The notes beneath the pieces were generated by a model that saw only the letters and a program-made list of their open reading frames with translations, was not told where the DNA came from and ran no database searches. 64,000 nt of DNA from Macrostomum lignano (Eukaryota), in the NCBI GenBank assembly GCA_002269645.1, contig NIVC01001079.1, forward strand, positions 62,001 through 126,000, given 5' to 3'. A program made the translations under genes and the position numbers. Shown piece by piece: positions 4,851-17,515 of the stretch (positions are counted from its first letter, which is position 1; every line of letters starts with the position of its first letter).

Positions 4851-5780
4851 CCTACCCCTGATCTGTCTCACTCTACCCCTGATCTGTCTCACTCTACCCC
4901 TGATCTGTCTCACTCTACCCCTGATCTGTCTCACTCAACCCCTAATCTGTCCCACTCTACCGTTGATCTGTCTCACTCTACCCCTGATCTGTCTCACTCT
5001 ACCCCTGATCTGTCTCACTCTACCCCTGATCTGTCTCACTCTACCGTTGATCTGTCTCACTCTATACCCCTGATCTGTCTCACTCTACCCCTGATCTTTC
5101 TCACTCTATACCCCTGATCTGTCTCACTCTATACCCCTGATCTGTCTCACTCTACCCCTGATCTGTCTCACTCTACCCTTGATCTGTCTCACTCTACCCC
5201 TGATCTGCCTCACTCTACCCCTGATCTGTCTCACTCTACCCCTGATCTGTCTCACTCTACCCCTGATCTGTCTCACTCTACCCCTGATCTGTCTCACTCT
5301 GCCCATGATCTGTCTCACTCTACCCTTGATCTGTCTCACTCTACCCTTGATCTGTCTCACTCTACCCTTGATCTGTCTCACTCTACCGTTGATCTGTCTC
5401 ACTCTATAACCCTGATCTGTCTCATTCTGCCCCTGATCTGTCTCACTCTACCCTTGATCTGTCTCATTCTGCCCCTGATCTGTCTCACTCTACCCCTGAT
5501 CTGTCTCACTCTACCCTTGATCTGTCTCACTCTACCCTTGATCTGTCTCACTCTACCCCTGATCTGTCTCACTCTACCCTTGATCTGTCTCACTCTACCC
5601 CTGATCTGTCTCACTCTACCCTTGATCTGTCTCACTCTGCCCATGATCTGTCTCACTCTACCCTTGATCTGTCTCACTCTACCCCTGATCTGTCTCACTC
5701 TACCCTTGATCTGTCTCACTCTACCCCTGATCTGTCTCACTCTACCCTTGATTTGTCTCATTCTGCCCCTGATCTGTCTC
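4851..5780. repeat. 21-bp minisatellite (CTACCCCTGATCTGTCTCACT)
   Basis: Direct tandem copies. It explains the LPLICLT and RVRQIRG ORFs. Confidence 0.95.
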
Positions 5781-6192
5781 TGTCTCTACTCTCACCCACA
5801 TGCACTCGCCGCTTACTTTTTGCACTCGCGTTTTCCTTTATCTTTCTAGGAACTCATTTCTGTTGACTAAACCTGCAGTCAATTGGTGCTGCCCACACGC
5901 TCAGTCAAAGCGGCATGGTGTATCGAAAATTCTCACAGGGGTAGAGTTTTTGTATCTGAAGCAGATCTGCAAAAGAAGATACGAACACCTACCTAGCTTC
6001 TGCTTTGATACACAAAGCGCTGAAAACTTCAACAGTAAATCGATCATCTCAGCCCTGTTAATTTTGAATCGAAGCACAGCGCAGATTGACGTCTTTGACT
6101 TGTACATGTAGCGTTGTCAGTGCTTATTGAAGCTGAAAATAAAATATAGAAACAACTTTTTAGGTTGACTGCTTGGGAGTTACTAACGCCTC

Positions 6193-6839
6193 ACAGCATC
6201 TCTACAGCATCACTACAGCACCTCTACAGCACCTCTACACGCCCCTACAGAACCTTTACAGCACTTTTACAGCACCTTTACAGCACCTCCACACAGAACC
6301 TTTACAGCATCTCTACAAAACCTTTACAGCACCCTTAGAGAACCTCTAAAGCACCTTTACAGCACCTCTAAAGCACCTTTACAGCACCTTTACAGCACCT
6401 CTACAGCACCTTTACAGCACCTCTACAGCACCTCTACAGCACCTCTACACGCCCCTACAGAACCTTTACAGCACCTCTACAGCACCTCTACAGCACCTTT
6501 ACAGCACCTCTACAGCACCTCTACAGCACCTCTACAGCACCTTTATAGCACCTCTACAGCACCTCTACACGCCCCTACAGAACCTCTACAGCACCATTAC
6601 AGCACCTCCACACAGAACCTTTACAGCACCCTTACAAAACCTCTACAGCACCTCTACAGCACCTTTACAGCACCTCTACAGCACCTTTACAGCACCTCTA
6701 CAAACCTTCCTCTACAAACATTTACAGCACCTCTACAGCACCTCTCTGCAGCACTCCTAGAGAACCTTTACAGCACCCTAGAGAACCTTTACAGCACCCC
6801 TAGAGAACCTTTACAGCACCTCTATAGCACCTCTATAGC
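6193..6839. repeat. 11-bp minisatellite (ACAGCACCTYT)
   Basis: Direct tandem copies, degenerate. Confidence 0.92.
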
Positions 6840-7492
6840 GCATCCCAAACTCCCAAATGCATTCCCTGGCACCCCTATGACGCTTTCACAACAGATCAGC
6901 AATTGCACCTCCTCAACACTGATGCGGTGAAATCAGGTAATATTTTATTTTTATATTAAAATCAGGCCATCTAAAAAATTAAATTGTTTTGCAGCAAAAA
7001 TATAATTTGAAACACGAGCGCCACTTTGCTCCGGAAAATGTTGATTTTCAACATTTCTAGAAGTCCAATAGAAGTCAATTTGGTTTATTAAAATTCTGGT
7101 TGAACAAGCACAAAGTCTTGCATCAATAAGATTGAATAGGTCATAATTTATTGTTTTGGATGGTCAGAAATATCTTTATTGCTTATTTATAGCTTGGCAG
7201 AAACCTTCCGACCCATGGAGTCTCCACAAAAAATACACTTTATTGCATTTTGTCTTCTGGTGTAATAATATAAAGATAAATTTCAAAATAAATTGAAGCA
7301 TAATATCATTCAAATTTTGACGGGTTATGACATACGGGCTGAAAAAAATCTAATAAATCCGATCTGTAGCTAGCGGATGCTCCCGAAATTTGCTTTGTTA
7401 AAATCGTGTCTTTCTAAAAACGAGCATCAGACTTTTTTGTCAAGCGCTCGGCTGTGTTGCTTCTCGTCTCGGTTCAACCAGCTGTCAAGTTA

Positions 7493-7971
7493 TTAGAGAC
7501 CATTGTTCACGTGATGGCAGATCACTGCGCACCGACGCATGACGCATCGATAGCTCAGGCTGTTGTGCCGCCTGGCGCAGTCCCTGTTGGTGAAGCATTG
7601 GACACGAAGCACGTAGCAGTCACCGTTAGAGTGAAACAAAAATCGCTTGTTGATGGCAGGGCCCTGCTGCTGCGGCTGGTTCTCCGACTGCTGCAGGTTG
7701 CGGGCTCTGGGGTCAATGCTGAGCCACTCGAGTGCTGGGTTGGGGTCCTCGTCCACTGCGCGGTTGGTTGGTTGGTTGGTTGGTTGGTTGGTTGGTTGGT
7801 TGGTTGGTTGGTTGGTTGGTTGGTTGGTTGGTTGGTTGGTTGGTTGGTTGGTTGGTTGGTTGGTTGGTACAAAGACTTACCCAGTCCGACGTGAAAGCCG
7901 CCAACAAAGACTATTGGGCCAATGCCAGCTACTAGAATCGCAAGCAGAGCAGTTCTCAGTTGAGTGTGCAT
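7493..7971 (-). CDS. Secreted cysteine-rich peptide precursor, 117 aa, 2 exons
   Basis: Exon 1 7971-7881 ([30 protein letters not shown], donor G|GTAAGT). Intron 7880-7756. Exon 2 7755-7493 (acceptor CGCAG|), in frame. Hydrophobic N-terminus, acidic/Gln-rich spacer, KR, then a 49-aa peptide with 6 Cys and a stop. Confidence 0.8.
7762..7867. repeat. (TTGG)n microsatellite filling the peptide-gene intron
   Basis: Perfect tetranucleotide run. Confidence 0.97.
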
Positions 7972-8241
7972 GTTAAAAACTAATAATTCTATCTAAGGCT
8001 GTAGGTCCTGCCGCATTGAACTAGTCAGTGATTTGCATTGGCCCCCTGCTCATCCTTATTTAACCATTCGCTATGTGGAATTTTCCCTCTTGATTCGGAG
8101 GTGCAACCTGATTGGCTGGCAGCAAGCTGGGGCTTGCGTTGTCTCATGTCTTCTATTGGATCAGAAATTGTGAAGCATGAATTCTTTTGGATAGTTAATA
8201 AGGTAAAGAAAGAAAAATGTTAGATTGGTGCGAACTATTTC

Positions 8242-8610
8242 AGATGCACAGGGGATCAGATAGATGCACAGGGGATCAGATAGATGCACAGGGGATCAGA
8301 TAGATGCACAGGGGATCAGATAGATGCACAGGGGATCAGATAGATGCACAGGGGATCAGATAGATGCACAGGGGATCAGATAGATGCACAGGGGATCAGA
8401 TAGATGCACAGGGGATCAGATAGATGCACAGGGGATCAGATAGATGCACAGGGGATCAGATAGATGCACAGGGGATCAGATAGATGCACAGGGGATCAGA
8501 TAGATGCACAGGGGATCAGATAGATGCACAGGGGATCAGATAGATGCACAGGGGATCAGATAGATGCACAGGAGATCAGATAGATGCACAGGGATCAGAT
8601 AGATGCACAG
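8242..8610. repeat. 20-bp minisatellite (GATAGATGCACAGGGGATCA)
   Basis: Near-perfect tandem copies. Confidence 0.96.
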
Positions 8611-9277
8611 GAGACGATATAGATGTATATGAGATTCGATAGAAGGATAGGAAGACTTACAGACAGGCAAGTTTAAGTACAAGTCAACATTTAAAAAATA
8701 TCAACATCATGGACAACCTCCTACCCCATACAGCCTCCCACTCTTCATCGGAGCCGATTCCAAAGGATGTCCAAAATAAGGGTTAAAGATTTTTCTGCTG
8801 GCAGGACTGGGCCCACACTCACTTGAGTTGAAGAGAACCAAAGACTATTGGTGAGTATAAGACAAAATTTTCAAGCAAACAGCCCTGCTGGATAATGTCG
8901 GCTTGCATGCGGGCTGCATGTGTTTATGGATAGCAAGGGGGCTGGAGGGCGAGGCGGTGGGGATCGATCTGAGGCGGATCGGGTAGCTATTAGTTAATTG
9001 ACAAATTTTAGATAAACAGACTGGCTAGTTTGTTTTTGGCGTCAATGCTGGTATTTTTTATGCTTGTGTAAACAGAAGAGAAATGTCATACGTTATAGGT
9101 AGGAATTAGGGAAGGGTAAAGACAGGTAGCAAGAGAGGGGAGACACAGGTAAGAGAGGGGAGAGACAGGTAAAGAGGGGATAGACAGGTAAGAGAGGGGA
9201 GAGACAGGTAAAACAGGGGACAGAGTAAGAGAGGGAAGAGGAGAGACAGGTGATAGAGGAGAGAGAAATGGGTGATG

Positions 9278-9566
<289 letters not shown>

Positions 9567-12201
9567 GGCGGTGAACTGTAGCGGTGCTAACAAAACATCA
9601 ATCAGTGGTTAATCGCTATTTATTGCAATAACAAGCAATATCCGGTGAGCAGTGGGTCTAATGCAATCGCCGGGGCGCACCGCACAGTCAGAGGCCTATA
9701 GGCATCGGACGTACACAAAATGCCCAGCTGACCATCAGCCAGTCAGCTGTGCTGCGGGCTACGCAGATTTGCTATACAAGTAGCTGAGTGGGCGGACTCA
9801 CTCGATCGAGGTCGCGACCCCTCGAGGCGGCAATCGAGCATCGAGGCTTTATTTTGACCCGCGCAAACCGCAAGGCGTCCCCGATGCAAGAAATTATTGT
9901 GTATTGTATAATAATTTTACAGGCTGAGAGGTCAATGAGTATATAGTAAGTTGTTTTTGCTTCTGACTTGGAATGTATAAAAATAGCAACTGCCTTATTT
10001 GGCTTCGGTTGAAAGGGCTGATTCATGCTAGTATTTACGGGTATTGATGGTCAGCGCTACTTCGATTCCTAATCCAAAATTGAGTAAACTATATATGTAG
10101 TGTTCCATTATAGATGCCTTCTCTGGGTTCTGGCGCCCCTGGTGCTGGCGCCCCTGGTGGTGCTGGTGCTGAAGCCGCCCCTGGTGCTGGCACTGACCCA
10201 ATTAAAGTATCGCTCCTCAAGATTCCTCAGTAATAAGAATTCATGGCCCTATACACCACTCTGTACATACATTGTACGAGCTGCATGCACTTAGAGGTTT
10301 CTATACAGTATGTGCATGTACGAGTATTTTCAACGCCAATCTTGCGAAGTCAATTTCATATATTGATGTTGATTGATATTGATGTTTTGAAACTGATATG
10401 TCTCATCAGTTTCAAAAGCCAAAAAACTGTGGCACAACCATGTAACACATAGTACATGTTGCTGTACATGTGAGGACATATCGCCGCTGTTCTAAGTAAG
10501 TATTTTTTAAATGATGACGTTATCGATCCTAACATCAACTTTAACAGCGGAAAAATTCGCAGCTACAATGTACATGCTGCATGTTACATGTAGTACCAAA
10601 GTTCAATTAAGATAGTTTCGCTGCATGTTTGACAATATGGCTGCAGTGAGATCTGGAAAATTCAAAGGCTTTTTCCTGGATTTTCCATGAATTTTCCATG
10701 GATTTTCTTTATCGTATATTCCCTTAATCACGATGCTTTCAAAGCGCTGAAAACCTACGGGTGATATGGATGCAGCAGTGCGGAAAACTGTTGTGTACAT
10801 GTATGGCTTACTGCTGCTGCTGGGATCAGGATCAAAATTCACAAGCGCTCGTGTCAGCTTGGTAGGCAGTGGATGAAGCACCAAGCAGTCAAGCCTTTTC
10901 GATTGCGTGCAGCAGCGTATGCAGCAGATGCAACGGCAGCACTCCCACCTTGCATGCATGTACATGTAAATACAAGTACTAGTTTGCGACTAATTGTTTC
11001 GATTCATGTCTTTTAGTTGATAGAGTGAAAAGGCGTCTGCCTCGCGTAGAATGCAAAAAAGTTTTTGTAGATTAATGTTTTTTGGCTTATTGTCTGCTTG
11101 AATGTTCAAAATATTGGACTACATTTTGATGTACATCCAATATACTAAATACTAAACTAAATGTACAGGGCCGTAAATTATTCAAAATACGTCACCTTAT
11201 ATTTTTGTATAAAAATTATCTAAATATATAATTATCTAAAATTATTTAAATAATTTTTTAGCTTTTTGATTTTATTTTTTTATAGTTTTTTTAGCTTAAC
11301 CGTTTGAATTTTTTTTATTGCTTTGTTTTATTTTGCAATAGTTTATCATAGCAGTGTGCAAGATTTTAAAAAGGGAATATTTTAGAGTTTCAAATTATTA
11401 GATAATTTACTATGAATTTACTATGCCTATAGATTTTTATACTTTTTTTAGACCAATAGGCTGTATATTGATTTTATATTTAAGTAGAATATTTATTTAT
11501 TTCATAAATACTTATATTTTTATTACTACAAATTGTTATTTTTAATAGTAATTATTATTATTGAAATTTACCTATCCTCTAAATAAGGCTTTTGATCCAA
11601 TACTATTTTATAAAAATAATTGCTAAGCTAATTTGAAGCTAGAGGCAAAGGTTTATCATGTAAATGTTAAAACCATGTTATGAAATTTATTATTATGAAA
11701 TATATTTAGTAGAATGATAGTTTGTGATTTGTATTAAATTTACCTTTTTTTGAACCACTCAAATTTTATTTAGATTAATTGCTTTACCACAGTTTAATTT
11801 GTATATGTTCAACTAGGCCTATTTAGTTTCTAAGAAGCAAAGCACAATGAGGTTGTACTATAAAGCTGTTATAGCATAAGTTCAATTGTATGTCAAAACT
11901 TTTACACTGCCAAGATAGGAGCAAGAATGATCTTATCTTAGCTCATACAATGGCTTTATACAATGGGCCCAATATTTTTCAAATCTAGTTTTTAAGAAAT
12001 ACAGGATGTTTTGGTACCTAGTTTCTAAGAATTGCATGTGCTGTCTAAATTTATATTTTTTAAAGAAACGATTTGTAGCTGTAATGAGAATGCACATTTT
12101 AAAATTTCAAAATCGCTACTGTAATGAGAACATCCATTTGACAGTTCAAGGACTCTACAAGGCCTAAAAGTACACTGCACAGTAGTAGCACACTGACTGC
12201 G

Positions 12202-12882
12202 ATGCCTTCATCAGGCAACGGCGGCAGTTCTAGCGGCAGTTTACATCATCGGAAAAGGAAAAGCAGACGGCACAGCGGTGGCAGCGGCTCGGCTGCCCCC
12301 AAGGTTTGCCCCGTGTGCGAGACCCTCCTCCCAGCTGACAGCCGTCACCGCCAGCCGGAGGACCACATCCTTGACCTGCTCCGCTCTGTGTTCACCCGCG
12401 GTGCCAGCCAATCATTTTACCATCATGCTCTGCAAATTCACTGGGATTCATTTTTCATGGCCATGCCGGCAGACTTCCCCTTACCCTACTGCCGGCTCTG
12501 CTGCATGCACTTTCCCGGCTTTGTGCCGTTCGCGCACCACCTGTGCCAGCGAGCCAGCCTGATTGTGGACACCAAAACTGACCGACTGCACACTGAACTG
12601 CTGGGCCATTTTGTAGTGTTTCTAGCCGGAGTTGGCAACCCAGCGCTGGATCTGCGCCTGCAGGCTGAGAGAGCCGGCGAGTTCCTGTGCCGCCGCTGCC
12701 AGCCGGGCATCGAGAAGCTGCAACTGAAATCTGGCGCAGCCAGTGCTGCAGCCAAGGCGGCTGCCGCTGCCAACCGGTCTGCCGCTACCGCCGCCACCGC
12801 GGTGACCTCTTCGTCTGATTTTGCTGTCAAACTGGAGCCCACCGGCACCCCGTCCGTGCTGCTGCCGCCACCTGCCCAGCCT

Positions 12883-12918
<36 letters not shown>

Positions 12919-15900
12919 CAACAGCAGCACTTCTCTTATCAGTGAGTTCTGTACTTCCGCAATTTCCTGTTTCTATTAAAATAGCGAGATACAACTGAGT
13001 CTTTTTTTAAAGAATTTAATAATATTTTGGAATCTCTTCAATAATTGCTTATCAGATTTTAATATCGTTTCTAAGAATTGGGTGAAACTTCTATAATCTA
13101 GTTTTGAAATCTAGTTTCAGGGTATTAGGTAAACTTTGAGATGTATTTTCTAATGACGTAGGGGTTACTTCTGCCTTCTGGAATAAATTCTACGGCTGAC
13201 ACCAAGCTTTCGCAGGGATTTTTCCTGTATTATGAGAAATCCCACCCGGTTAGCCACTAAGCCTAACAAGTGTACAAGCTGTGATTCCTTCTCTCTGAAA
13301 TCTCTCTCTCAAAGAACTGCGACAACGGAAACGAATTATTTGATCTGGCTCTCAGTTGGCTCCTATTTATAGTAAAAATTTTCCTAACTATTTTAAACAA
13401 AACAAGATATACAAAATATTTCAAAATATTCGTTCGGTATAACAAAAAATAAAGCTTTGCAATTATAGGTTTCTAAGAAAGTTTGCCTACTAAAAGCGAA
13501 GCCTATTACACTTAGAAAAGCAATGCGTTTTAGAATCTATTTCCTAAAAGTTTGTGAGATGTTTATAGTATAGTTTCTTAGAAATGCAAGATTTTTGGAA
13601 TCTACACGTAGTTTCTAGGAATCGCGTAAGCTGTTTGTAATCTAGTTTCTAAGAATCGCGTAAGCTGTTTGTAATCTAGTTTCTAGGAATCGCGTAAGCT
13701 GTTTGTAATCCAGTTTCTAAGAATCGCGTTAGCAGTTTGTAATCTAGTTTCTAAGAATCACGTTAGCTGTTTGTAATCCAGTTTCTAAGAAACGCGTTAG
13801 CAGTTTGTAATCTAGTTTCTAAGAATCGCGTTAGCAGTTTGTAATCTAGTTTCTAAGAATCGCGTTAGCTGTTTGTAATCTAGTTTCTAAGAATCGCGTT
13901 AGCTGTTTGTAATCTAGTTTCTAAGAATCACGTTAGCTGTTTGTAATCTAGTTTCTAAGAATCGCGTTAGCAGTTTGTAATCTAGTTTCTAAGAATCACG
14001 TTAGCTGTTTGTAATCCAGTTTCTAAGAATCGCGTTAGCAGTTTGTAATCTAGTTTCTAAGAATCGCGTTAGCTGTTTGTAATCTAGTTTCTAAGAAGAA
14101 AAACAATATTTTTTGCAATCCCACCTAAGAATCGAGTTATTGCGATTTATTGTTTCTAAGAAACAAGTAATTCGAGAAGACCTCAAAGTTCAAAACTATT
14201 TGAAACTGTACACGTATCTCCGCCAGAACCCCAGCTGGATCGGCGACAGCGGTTGGTTTTACCGATATCAAGATGCCGTCGATGCCGTCGCGGCAGCGAC
14301 TGCTGTTCAGAAATCGCTCCAGCATGTTGATGTGCGGCGTCTGCCAGACTGGCATCGACAACTTGGCCGCTCACCTGCTGACGGTGCTGCGCAGCCTGAA
14401 GCCGCCTGCCGATCAGCGAAGCCGCAACCGGGTGGTCAGCGGCACCACCCGCTCCGCCCTGGCTGAGTACCGCAGGTCGCACGTGTCCCAACTCATTGGC
14501 GATTGCGTCTCAACTCGTATCGAACGGTACAACATCATGCGCACAGTGTTCATGTGCCCCGCATGCCAGCTGCACTTCCATTCGCCCAGCTCGTTCTACA
14601 CCTACTTCTTTAATCACCTGGCCAGGAATTACAGGTGAGACTAATTTGGGAGGTCTTGAAGCTTAAATTTGCTTATTCTCTGCTCCCCTCCTCTGCTTAG
14701 ATGCTCAAATCTGCGTCTCAGATGTTTGAATGCTTGAATCTACCTCTCAGATGTTTGAATCTTTCTCTCAGATGCTTGAATCTACCTCTCAGATGTTTGA
14801 ATCTACCTCACAGATGTTTGAATCTGCCTTTCAGATGCTTAAATCTACCTCTCAGATGTTTGAATCTACCTCTCAGATGTTTGAATCTGCCTTTCAGATG
14901 CTTAAATCTACCTCTCAGATGTTTGAATCTGCCTCTCAGATGTTTGAATCTACCTCTCAGATGTTTGAATCTGCCTCTCAGATGCTTGAATCTGCCTCTC
15001 AGATGTTTGAATCTACCTCTCAGATGTTTGAATCTGCCTCTCAGATGCTTGAATCTGCCTCTCAGATGTTTGAATCTGCCTCTCAGATGCTTGAATCTGC
15101 CTCTCAGATGTTTGAATCTGCCTCTCAGATGCTTGAATCTACCTCTCAGATGTTTGAATCTTTCTCTCAGATGTTTGAATCTGCCTCTCAGATGTTTGAA
15201 TCTGCCTCTCAGATGCTTGAATCTGCCTCTCAGATGCTTGAATCTGCCTCTCAGATGTTTGAATCTGCCTTTCAGATGCTTGAATCTACCTCTCAAATGC
15301 TTGAATCTACCTCTCAGATGCTTGAATCTGCCTCTCAGATGTTTGAATCTGCCTCTCAGATGCTTGAATCTGCCTCTCAGATGTTTGAATCTGCCTCTCA
15401 GATGCTTGAATCTGCCTCTCAGATGTTTGAATCTGCCTCTCAGATGCTTGAATCTGCCTCTCAGATGCTTGAATCTGCCTCTCAGATGTTTGAATCTGCC
15501 TCTCAGATGCTTGAATCTGCCTCTCAGATGTTTGAATCTACCTCTCAGATGCTTGAATCTTCCTCTCAGATGTTTGAATCTTCCTCTCAGGTGCTTGAAT
15601 CTTCCTCTCAGATGCTTGAATCTGCCTCTCAGATGTTTGAATCTACCTCTCAGATGTTTGAATCTGCCTCTCAGATGCTTGAATCTTCCTCTCAGATGTT
15701 TGAATCTTCCTCTCAGGTGCTTGAATCTTCCTCTCAGATGCTTGAATCTGCCTCTCAGATGTTTGAATCTACCTCTCAGATGTTTGAATCTGCCTCTCAG
15801 ATGCTTGAATCTGCCTCTCAGATGCTTGAATCTGCCTCTCAGATGCTTGAATCTGCCTCTCAGATGCTTGAATTTGCCTCAGATGCTTGAATCTGCCTCT

Positions 15901-17515
15901 CAGATGTTTGAATCTGCCTCTCAGATGCTTGAATCTGCCTCTCAGATGCTTGAATCTGCCTCTCAGATGTTTGAATCTGCCTCTCAGATGCTTGAATCTG
16001 CCTCTCAGATGCTTGAATCTTCCTCTCTGCTCCACCTATTAGCCAGTCCATCCGCGTCCCCCCTGGCCCCCATAGGGAGGACCAGCCCGAGCAGGCCCAC
16101 ACAATCTTGATGCACCGAATTGTCGCGTTGCTGATCGACTACGTCGCCGATCGGGTGAGCATCGACGAGGTCGAGCAATTTTTTTTCGGCGGCGGCAACA
16201 AAACCGGCGACTGCGGCTTCTTCTGCGACGCCGGCGGCCTGGAGCTCCGGCACGTTCGCAACGGCACCGGCATCTGCGTCGGGCAGCAGCGGATCACCGA
16301 CTTCGCCGTCGACTGGATCGCTCCGGCCGGATTTTCCACAGATGGTCTGACGGCCGCCGCCTCCGTCTGGCGTTCGAGATCTTCGTCCACCACCTCCCTC
16401 GTCGTGCCCGACTCGCCGACGGCCACCGACGCGACGATCATAGTGCCGAATAATGCCGACGTCGTCTGCCAGTACTGCGGCGCCGGATTCAGCGGCCGAC
16501 ATCACCTGTCGGCGCTGCACAATCACCTGCTGCGCGCCCTGTTCCTTGGCTCCTGCGAGGAGGAGGCCGGTGACCTGCCAGGTGCTGCAGAGACTTCCCA
16601 GCGGCGGCATCGACTGTGCTGGTCGGCTTTCGCGCCTGCGGCACGGCCCGCCAGGTATGTTGGCTTTTTATTGATACCTGTGTCTACTGCCCCAGACTGT
16701 ACACTCCCTCAATCGATATCTGGTTCCCTTACCCCAGAGTGTTCACTCCCTCGATCGATATCTGTTTCCCTTACCCCAGAGTGTACACTCCCTCGATCGA
16801 TATCTGTTTCCCTTACCCCAGAGTGTACACTCCCTCGATCGATATCTGTTTCCCTTACCCCAGAGTGTACACTCCCTCGATCGATATCTGTTTCCCTTAC
16901 CCCAGAGTGTACACTCCCTCGGTTGATAGCTGGTTCCCTTACCCCAGAGTGTACACTCCCTCAATCGATATCTGTTTCCCTTACCCCAGAGTGTACACTT
17001 CCTCGATCGATATCTGTTTCCCTTACCCCAGAGTGTACACTCTGTCGATCGATATCTGTTTCCCTTACCCCAGAGTGTACACTCCGTCGATCGATATCTG
17101 TTTCCCTTACCCCAGAGTGTACACTCCGTCGATCGATTTCTGTTTCCCTTACCCCAGAGTGTACACTCCGTCGATCGATATCTGTTTCCCTTACCCCAGA
17201 GTGTACATCCTAGAATACATTCGATCTCTAACCCCTCTCAGATGCACCGCCTGCGGCAAAATCTGTGGCAGCCTTGAGCTTCTAGCTGAACATATTGGCG
17301 ACAAAATCCTGTCGACCGGGTCGGCTTCTCACCACGCGGTGGCTGAGGACATCGCCGAGATGCTTATGGACGTGGCCACCGGCCGTGCTGCTCACGAGCG
17401 GGCGTGCGGCTACATGGAGAATTTCCTGCTGCTCAACGACAAATCCGTCGACGGCTGCGACGACGACGACGAATTTCCGGCTTCCGCTTCGGCGATTTCC
17501 ACGAAACCTGTGTGA
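12202..17515 (+). CDS. Orphan protein with multiple atypical CxxC...H zinc-finger-like motifs, 677 aa, 4 exons
   Basis: Exons 12202-12941, 14227-14634, 16043-16654 and 17242-17515 join in frame (all introns phase 2, GT-AG; total 2034 nt). Motifs: CPVC..EDHI, CRLC..AHHL, CGVC..AAHL, CPAC..FNHL, CQYC..HNHL, CTAC..AEHI. Basic HRKRKSRRH patch plus polyA and polyQ tracts. Confidence 0.82.
13605..14097. repeat. 34-bp minisatellite (TCTAGTTTCTAAGAATCGCGTTAGCTGTTTGTAA), intron 1
   Basis: Tandem copies. Confidence 0.95.
14698..16025. repeat. 21-bp minisatellite (CTCAGATGCTTGAATCTGCCT), intron 2
   Basis: About 60 copies. It explains the 469-aa and 386-aa heptad ORFs. Confidence 0.96.
16690..17207. 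repeat. 42-bp minisatellite (CCAGAGTGTACACTCCCTCGATCGATATCTGTTTCCCTTACC), intron 3
   Basis: About 12 copies. Confidence 0.96.

Follow-up and report, generated by a model that had tools for sequence, protein, structure and literature searches.

Lineage-specific cysteine-rich secreted peptides are common in invertebrate genomes. A signal sequence followed by a pro-region, a dibasic site and a disulfide-rich peptide is the classic layout of toxin precursors, and a phase-1 intron between the signal and the mature exons is common in genes for antimicrobial peptides. The described classes to which such a peptide may be compared have different cysteine frameworks. CSαβ (cis-)defensins and scorpion-toxin-like peptides have six cysteines in ~45-50 residues and a helix followed by a two-stranded antiparallel sheet, with CxxxC in the helix and CxC in the last strand, and β- and big defensins carry C-x6-C-x3-4-C-x9-13-C-x4-6-CC on an all-β core. 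ShKT domains (PF01549) combine a C-terminal C-x3-C-x2-C spacing with a helical fold, BPTI/Kunitz domains are spaced C-x8-C-x15-C-x7-C-x12-C-x3-C, knottins have a short or zero gap between the third and fourth cysteines, often as adjacent CC, and the WAP four-disulfide core holds eight cysteines. The legume late nodulins or NCR peptides (PF07127) are a lineage-restricted family of plants. Big defensins follow a dibasic pro-site (PMC3182236). Furthermore, the Mytilus MgCRP-I and conotoxin-type peptides are short secreted pre-pro-peptides with six invariant cysteines, encoded by lineage-restricted multigene families, and in venom and antimicrobial families such as MgCRP-I the pre-pro part is conserved and the mature part hypervariable (PMC4558851).

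The locus that we compare with these systems lies in a window of 64,000 nucleotides of Macrostomum lignano (contig NIVC01001079.1, positions 62,001 to 126,000 of the forward strand), the window being the whole stretch of DNA that was analysed, and is a two-exon gene on the minus strand, 7971..7493. Scripted splicing of this strand gave a coding sequence of 354 nt, and the product of 117 aa reproduced exactly the pre-pro-peptide that an initial annotation had read across the microsatellite intron from the same coordinates. Exon 1 (7881..7971, 91 nt, CDS nt 1-91) extends from the start codon ATG at 7971 and Met1 to the first base of codon 31, in agreement with the deposited CDS, and encodes an n-region (MHTQLR) followed by an apolar stretch of 20 residues, a putative signal peptide or possibly a signal anchor. 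The donor TGG/GTAAGT (exon 1/intron boundary at 7881/7880) and the acceptor CGCAG/TG (intron/exon 2 boundary at 7756/7755) delimit a phase-1 intron of 125 nt (7756..7880, GTAAGT...CGCAG), nearly all of which is (CCAA)n microsatellite; Tandem Repeats Finder places the perfect 4-nt repeat at 7762..7868 (period 4, 26.8 copies, 100% matches). Exon 2 (7493..7755, 263 nt including the TAA stop at 7493..7495) encodes an acidic and Gln-rich pro-region that is predicted to be disordered (residues 31-66, ending in QQQGPAIN, 7649..7755), the codons AAG CGA for Lys67-Arg68 (7643..7648), a putative proprotein-convertase site, and a mature-like peptide of 49 aa with six cysteines (FLFHSNGDC...CHHVNNGL, 7496..7642). 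The recomputed cysteine layout of the 49-mer, C-x6-C-x5-C-x10-C-x4-C-x3-C (gaps 6/5/10/4/3), and the KR site are those initially described; the peptide is Arg/His-rich, with a net charge of +5, four His and a pI of 9.2. The earlier remark that ORF finders split the gene also holds, as the ORF list contains an 87-aa ORF (7493..7756) and a 138-aa read-through ORF (7555..7971), the latter translating the microsatellite as (PTNQ)n and then leaving the frame. Outside the coding region, AATAAA at 7239..7244 on the minus strand, 249 nt past the stop and at equal offset in all three genomic copies, is a likely poly(A) signal, and TTAAATAA (8056..8063, minus strand), ~90 nt upstream of the ATG and conserved in the three copies, may be a weak TATA-like element.

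The identical 117-aa protein is deposited in GenBank as PAA72559.1 and PAA84384.1 (“hypothetical protein BOX15_Mlig006190g1/g2”) and in UniProt as A0A267GG84, and the gene segment of NIVC01001079.1 is identical to the window. The three Mlig006190 genes are located on NIVC01001079.1, NIVC01000376.1 and NIVC01000384.1 of assembly GCA_002269645.1, and g3, the third of them (PAA84257.1), carries the changes N66S and Y78F. According to PMC5730564, the assembly was annotated from RNA-seq and from no other source: StringTie, TACO and de novo assemblies supplied the transcripts, trans-splicing and poly(A) reads fixed their ends, and TransDecoder called the ORFs. The 7881/7755 junction therefore has RNA support by way of the deposited annotation. 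The evidence that the gene is expressed is in this sense indirect but real, and its description as hidden in the initial annotation was not borne out, the exact protein being present in both databases and in an RNA-seq-based annotation. The public record includes the gene model, but in the literature searched we found no description of the family, of its processing motif or of its cysteine framework: the name Mlig006190 is absent from the full-text literature, and the work on Macrostomum cysteine-rich and secreted products, prohormones, antimicrobial peptides and single-cell atlases contained no paper on the family. The four family gene IDs were likewise not found in the supplements of the M. 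lignano expression papers PMC5816591, PMC7336406, PMC5946080, PMC5977470, PMC12896417 and PMC12732829, a weak negative as other identifiers may be used there. Spliced-leader trans-splicing is common in M. lignano (PMC5730564), and an AG acceptor-like site 9 nt before the start codon, in TTATTAG/TTTTTAAC-ATG (window 7972-7995, minus strand), could serve as a spliced-leader trans-splice site.

The three loci are syntenic over ~17 kb with ~90-95% identity and have in common an upstream neighbour gene of 679-681 aa, which fits the hidden polyploidy of M. lignano (PMC10733133). Splice sites are the same in the three copies and the intron measures 125 nt in the window, 201 nt in g3 and 235 nt in the remaining copy. 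If retained, the intron shifts the frame in the window copy (125 nt) and in the copy with 235 nt; in g3 (NIVC01000384.1) the 201-nt intron is a multiple of three and free of stops, leaving an unspliced continuous ORF of 184 aa with a (PTNQ)n insert in the pro-region. The variation in length between identical splice sites, together with the frame breaks on retention, indicates that the repeat behaves as non-coding DNA that needs removal by splicing. In the three paralogue groups with all copies fetched, and with one count per variable site, the pooled within-group changes were 10 synonymous and 7 nonsynonymous (pN/pS 0.22, binomial P=0.002 against neutrality), with no substitution at the KR site, the cysteines or any other invariant position. 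The copies are under purifying selection.

The protein belongs to four paralogue groups, Mlig006190 (the window gene), Mlig017203, Mlig004136 and Mlig025436, each with about three genomic copies and exactly three in each of the three groups fetched in full. A phmmer search with the precursor against 1.84 billion representative proteins returned six matches, all six from M. lignano, and in a word-indexed search of 5.8 billion clusters neither the single protein, which matched one cluster, nor the family profile retrieved anything but M. lignano proteins, in accordance with the lineage restriction proposed initially. The 64-kb window holds no further paralogue according to tblastn, in which all three queries (precursor, mature peptide and exon 1) matched no place other than the gene. 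By these protein searches, the four groups form a small uncharacterised family, detected so far only in M. lignano. Loss of the KR site and of the six cysteines in homologues had been named beforehand as evidence against a processed peptide; the paralogues, which share 27-40% of their full length with the window protein as identical residues, keep both. From KR onward 13 positions are invariant among the eight aligned members (K67, R68, F69, S73, G75, C77, C84, F85, D89, C90, C101, C106 and C110), giving the family motif KR/F-[LM]-[FY]-x-S-[NG]-G-x-C-x6-CF-x3-DC-x9-10-C-x4-C-x3-C. Before KR only M1 and A48 are invariant, the length of the pro-region varies widely, and the signal and pro parts cannot be aligned between groups. 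As judged from these alignments, which compare paralogues of one species, the mature domain is the conserved part of the precursor and the signal and pro parts are divergent. Lys67-Arg68 is kept in all eight sequences in the contexts INKR, ISKR, KTKR, AYKR and RAKR, and both the furin-type RAKR of Mlig025436 and the KTKR of Mlig017203 fit classical convertase sites. All four groups have one phase-1 intron just after the signal sequence, of 125 to 2201 nt, and their net charges are +5 (window gene), +3, +1 and -1. The N-terminus of the window protein has Arg6 followed by the 20-residue apolar run (maximal KD9 3.09), with small residues at VAG/I and VGG/F, and in the other three groups the h-region is short and classical, with 7-12 residues. 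With an identical deposited model, two further copies that have the same splice sites and three divergent paralogue groups that keep KR and the six cysteines, the gene is far beyond chance.

Five UniRef entries (P0003, P0007, P0008, P0011 and P0013) are older gene models that seem to be fused or frameshifted versions of these loci, and they were left out of the family alignments. They carry extra N-terminal sequence (331, 149, 1437, 177 and 120 aa, respectively), presumably so in the 1437-aa entry, and the 331-aa older model switches frame within the cysteine domain. The automatic names on these older models (BRICHOS, BPTI/Kunitz, Ion_trans and DUF4149) are mutually inconsistent for one peptide domain. 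Moreover, two identical-CDS copies of Mlig025436 were observed on NIVC01002470.1 in opposite orientation and ~28 kb apart (66841-69908 and 95507-98336), with introns of 789 and 551 nt; the pair looks like a recent local inverted duplication.

Profile and structure searches assigned the peptide to no known family, which agrees with the initial statement that none was recognisable. Among the eight members searched against Pfam, only two Mlig006190 sequences matched Nodulin_late (PF07127; E=0.0012, 19.5 bits against a gathering cut-off of 30.4), over residues 69-106 and five of the six cysteines, and apart from these there was a single DUF match, at E=0.065. The hmmscan of the eight members gave no match to ShK, Kunitz, WAP, defensin, EGF or LDLa models, and none to ShK even at E<=10. 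Sequence searches of the PDB, with the single protein and with the profile, gave nothing below E=0.69, and the rows for VLDL-receptor LDLa, NOS and Kir were rejected as noise. Structure prediction, suggested initially as a check, gave a helix and a β-hairpin: AlphaFold2 modelled the 49-mer from a 7-row family alignment with a mean pLDDT of 79.6, as a short strand, a helix at 19-26 and a hairpin at 31-36/39-44. The same elements appeared in the model of the full precursor, in which the domain has a pLDDT of 84-89, residues 21-68 are below 50 and KR lies exposed in the disordered low-pLDDT segment at the domain boundary. Foldseek of the pLDDT 79.6 model against 350,542 PDB chains returned no row below E=1. 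At the top were WAP half-domains (half-SLPI with TMq 0.49, elafin and omwaprin; E 1.1-7.9), and rows to scorpion CSαβ K+ and Na+ channel toxins had E 3.7-5.6 and a probability of <=0.06.

Compared with the described classes, the precursor resembles convertase-processed prohormones and neuropeptide precursors in its putative signal sequence, its disordered pro-region and an invariant KR right before a conserved C-terminal domain, and differs from them in having one peptide copy per precursor, no amidation signal and no sequence relation to described prohormone families. It shares with CSαβ defensins the six cysteines, the length, the predicted helix followed by a two-stranded antiparallel sheet and, in the window copy, the cationic charge. 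However, the CxxxC and CxC elements are missing from the family (gaps 6/5/10(9)/4/3 in all members), only C22 sits in the predicted helix, the Foldseek probability is as low as given above and no Pfam defensin model matches. The spacing resembles that of the β- and big defensins in its first gap (6) and between C4 and C5 (4), but every member ends in C-x3-C and not in adjacent CC, a central helix is predicted in place of an all-β core, and Foldseek and Pfam lend no support. Late nodulin is the only Pfam model with any real score, yet it lies below the gathering cut-off and matches only two of the eight members; as NCR peptides are a plant family of restricted lineage, the resemblance to them is most simply convergent cysteine spacing. 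With ShKT domains the peptide shares six cysteines within ~40 residues, and A0A267DLA0 is auto-named ‘ShKT domain-containing protein’, whereas the spacing is C-x4-C-x3-C, a β-hairpin is modelled and none of the eight members matches Pfam ShK. That UniRef name was rejected, as ‘BPTI/Kunitz’ stands on the same mature domain in another entry and ‘BRICHOS’ on a fused model; the names contradict each other and are unsupported by Pfam. The lack of the classical knottin pattern, noted initially, extends to all members, in which the C3-C4 gap is 9-10 residues. The six cysteines of the peptide stand against the eight of WAP domains, its spacing differs from that of BPTI/Kunitz, and neither has a Pfam match. 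Finally, the family recalls MgCRP-I and conotoxin-type peptides in its general organisation, but its cysteine framework is another one and its mature part is conserved while the pre-pro part diverges.

As the role of the peptide we favour, at somewhat less than even confidence, a signalling ligand ahead of a toxin or a membrane-active antimicrobial. The hydrophobic N-terminus would direct the precursor into the ER, where the six-cysteine domain would fold oxidatively with three disulfides into a compact helix and β-hairpin; a kexin/furin-type convertase would cut after Lys67-Arg68 and remove the disordered pro-region, and secretion would release a peptide of ~49 residues, which may act as an extracellular hormone- or neuropeptide-like ligand on a conserved endogenous target. 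This reading is favoured because the mature domain is conserved, including the first seven residues after the cleavage site, in precursors with a divergent pre-pro part, because net charge is not conserved, and because the family is small (four groups only) and under purifying selection. Against it count the lack of a C-terminal amidation signal or other neuropeptide hallmark in the precursor and the strongly cationic, Arg/His-rich composition of the window 49-mer, which would suit an antimicrobial; against secretion itself counts the apolar run of the window paralogue, which could be a signal anchor. The initial annotation had called the peptide toxin-, defensin- or neuropeptide-like: the toxin and defensin part is disfavoured by the conserved mature domain, the charge range from +5 to -1 and the lack of a defensin, ShKT or knottin signature, and the signalling part stands as the favoured reading. 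Its most specific form, to which we give a rather low probability, is that the four groups are an undescribed flatworm- or Macrostomum-restricted family of convertase-released hormones, with a six-cysteine framework of its own, a fold absent from the PDB and, in F-[LM]-[FY]-x-S-[NG]-G, a conserved N-terminus that would engage the receptor.

The leading alternative, although unlikely, is a host-defence peptide, antimicrobial and defensin-like, which epithelial or gland cells would release to kill or restrain microbes. The charge, the four His and the pI of the window 49-mer speak for it, as do the broadly defensin-like helix and β-hairpin, the sub-threshold late-nodulin match and the phase-1 intron that splits the signal exon from the mature exon as in antimicrobial peptide genes. 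However, the paralogues at +3, +1 and -1 do not keep the charge, the CSαβ signature (CxxxC...CxC) and the terminal CC of β- and big defensins are both missing, Foldseek found no defensin and gave its best scorpion-toxin-like rows a very low probability, the NCR score stays under the gathering cut-off in the two Mlig006190 sequences to which it is confined, and a conserved mature part with a divergent pre-pro part is the opposite of what is typical of antimicrobial families. Less probable still is some other extracellular role as a product of glands, for example as a protein of the seminal fluid or of reproduction more generally, as a protease inhibitor, or as an adhesive or rhabdite component. 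Many small, lineage-restricted secreted gland products occur in M. lignano (PMC5977470), and WAP-type inhibitor domains head the Foldseek list; every Foldseek E-value is nevertheless above 1 and the WAP cysteine number does not agree, the family IDs were not found in the seminal-fluid-screen or positional-expression supplements, in which other identifiers may be used, and purifying selection is unlike the fast evolution of reproductive proteins. An orphan-like gene confined to the data of one species, with a long apolar N-terminal run in the window paralogue, might also be a young ORF that is transcribed but has no function, or might encode a type II membrane-anchored protein from which no peptide is ever freed, but this is improbable in view of the 13 positions, KR and six cysteines included, that are invariant across four divergent groups, the pN/pS of 0.22, the confident AlphaFold2 domain model and the short, classical signal sequences of the remaining paralogues. 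The least probable reading, and a very improbable one, is in our view that of a toxin, or of a neurotoxin-like peptide used in defence, with ion channels of prey or predators as its targets. The precursor has the classic toxin layout, one paralogue is labelled ‘ShKT domain-containing’ in UniRef and scorpion K+ and Na+ channel toxins appear as weak matches in the Foldseek list; on the other hand, Pfam ShK is silent for all eight members even at E<=10, the conflicting ‘BPTI/Kunitz’ label on the same domain makes such labels unreliable, the C3-C4 gap of 10 rules out the knottin pattern, the modelled β-hairpin is unlike the helical ShKT fold, and there is neither a hypervariable mature region nor a large gene expansion. 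Furthermore, M. lignano is a diatom feeder and is not known to have a venom apparatus.

M. lignano is used as a model organism in work on regeneration, on stem cells and on reproduction in hermaphrodites and is, to our knowledge, the only flatworm with routine transgenesis, and its repertoires of peptide signalling and innate defence are poorly described. A small, constrained family of putative processed three-disulfide peptides provides four defined candidates that can be taken into in situ hybridisation and RNAi, and would give peptide catalogues a new cysteine framework. The find is of a routine type that would not surprise a specialist, a modest lead whose value is that of a testable candidate set in a tractable flatworm. 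For annotation practice, the locus indicates that RNA-seq-based annotation already catches short split genes of this type, and that UniRef automatic names for such peptides (ShKT, BPTI/Kunitz, BRICHOS) are not to be trusted.

On both sides the gene is flanked by long and very regular mini- and microsatellite arrays. In the window these are a 21-mer x44 array (4852-5780), an 11-mer x59 array (6189-6839), a 20-mer x18.5 array ~270 bp upstream of the ATG (8242-8611), (GATA)73 (9274-9566), a 34-mer x14 array (13609-14097), a 21-mer x62 array (14730-16027) and a 42-mer x12 array (16690-17207). The gene-flanking arrays align to the homeologous g3 locus (NIVC01000384.1), and many of these repeat alignments are offset. 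Two of the longest ORFs of the window, at 14701-16110 and 16616-17515 on the plus strand, are minisatellite translations, (CLNLPLR)n and (FPYPRVYTPSIDIC)n, and both fall within the neighbouring 681-aa gene model (window ~12157-17515, plus strand; no Pfam match). Because of this location inside the span of the gene model, the two minisatellite ORFs are probably intronic artefacts and not coding repeats.
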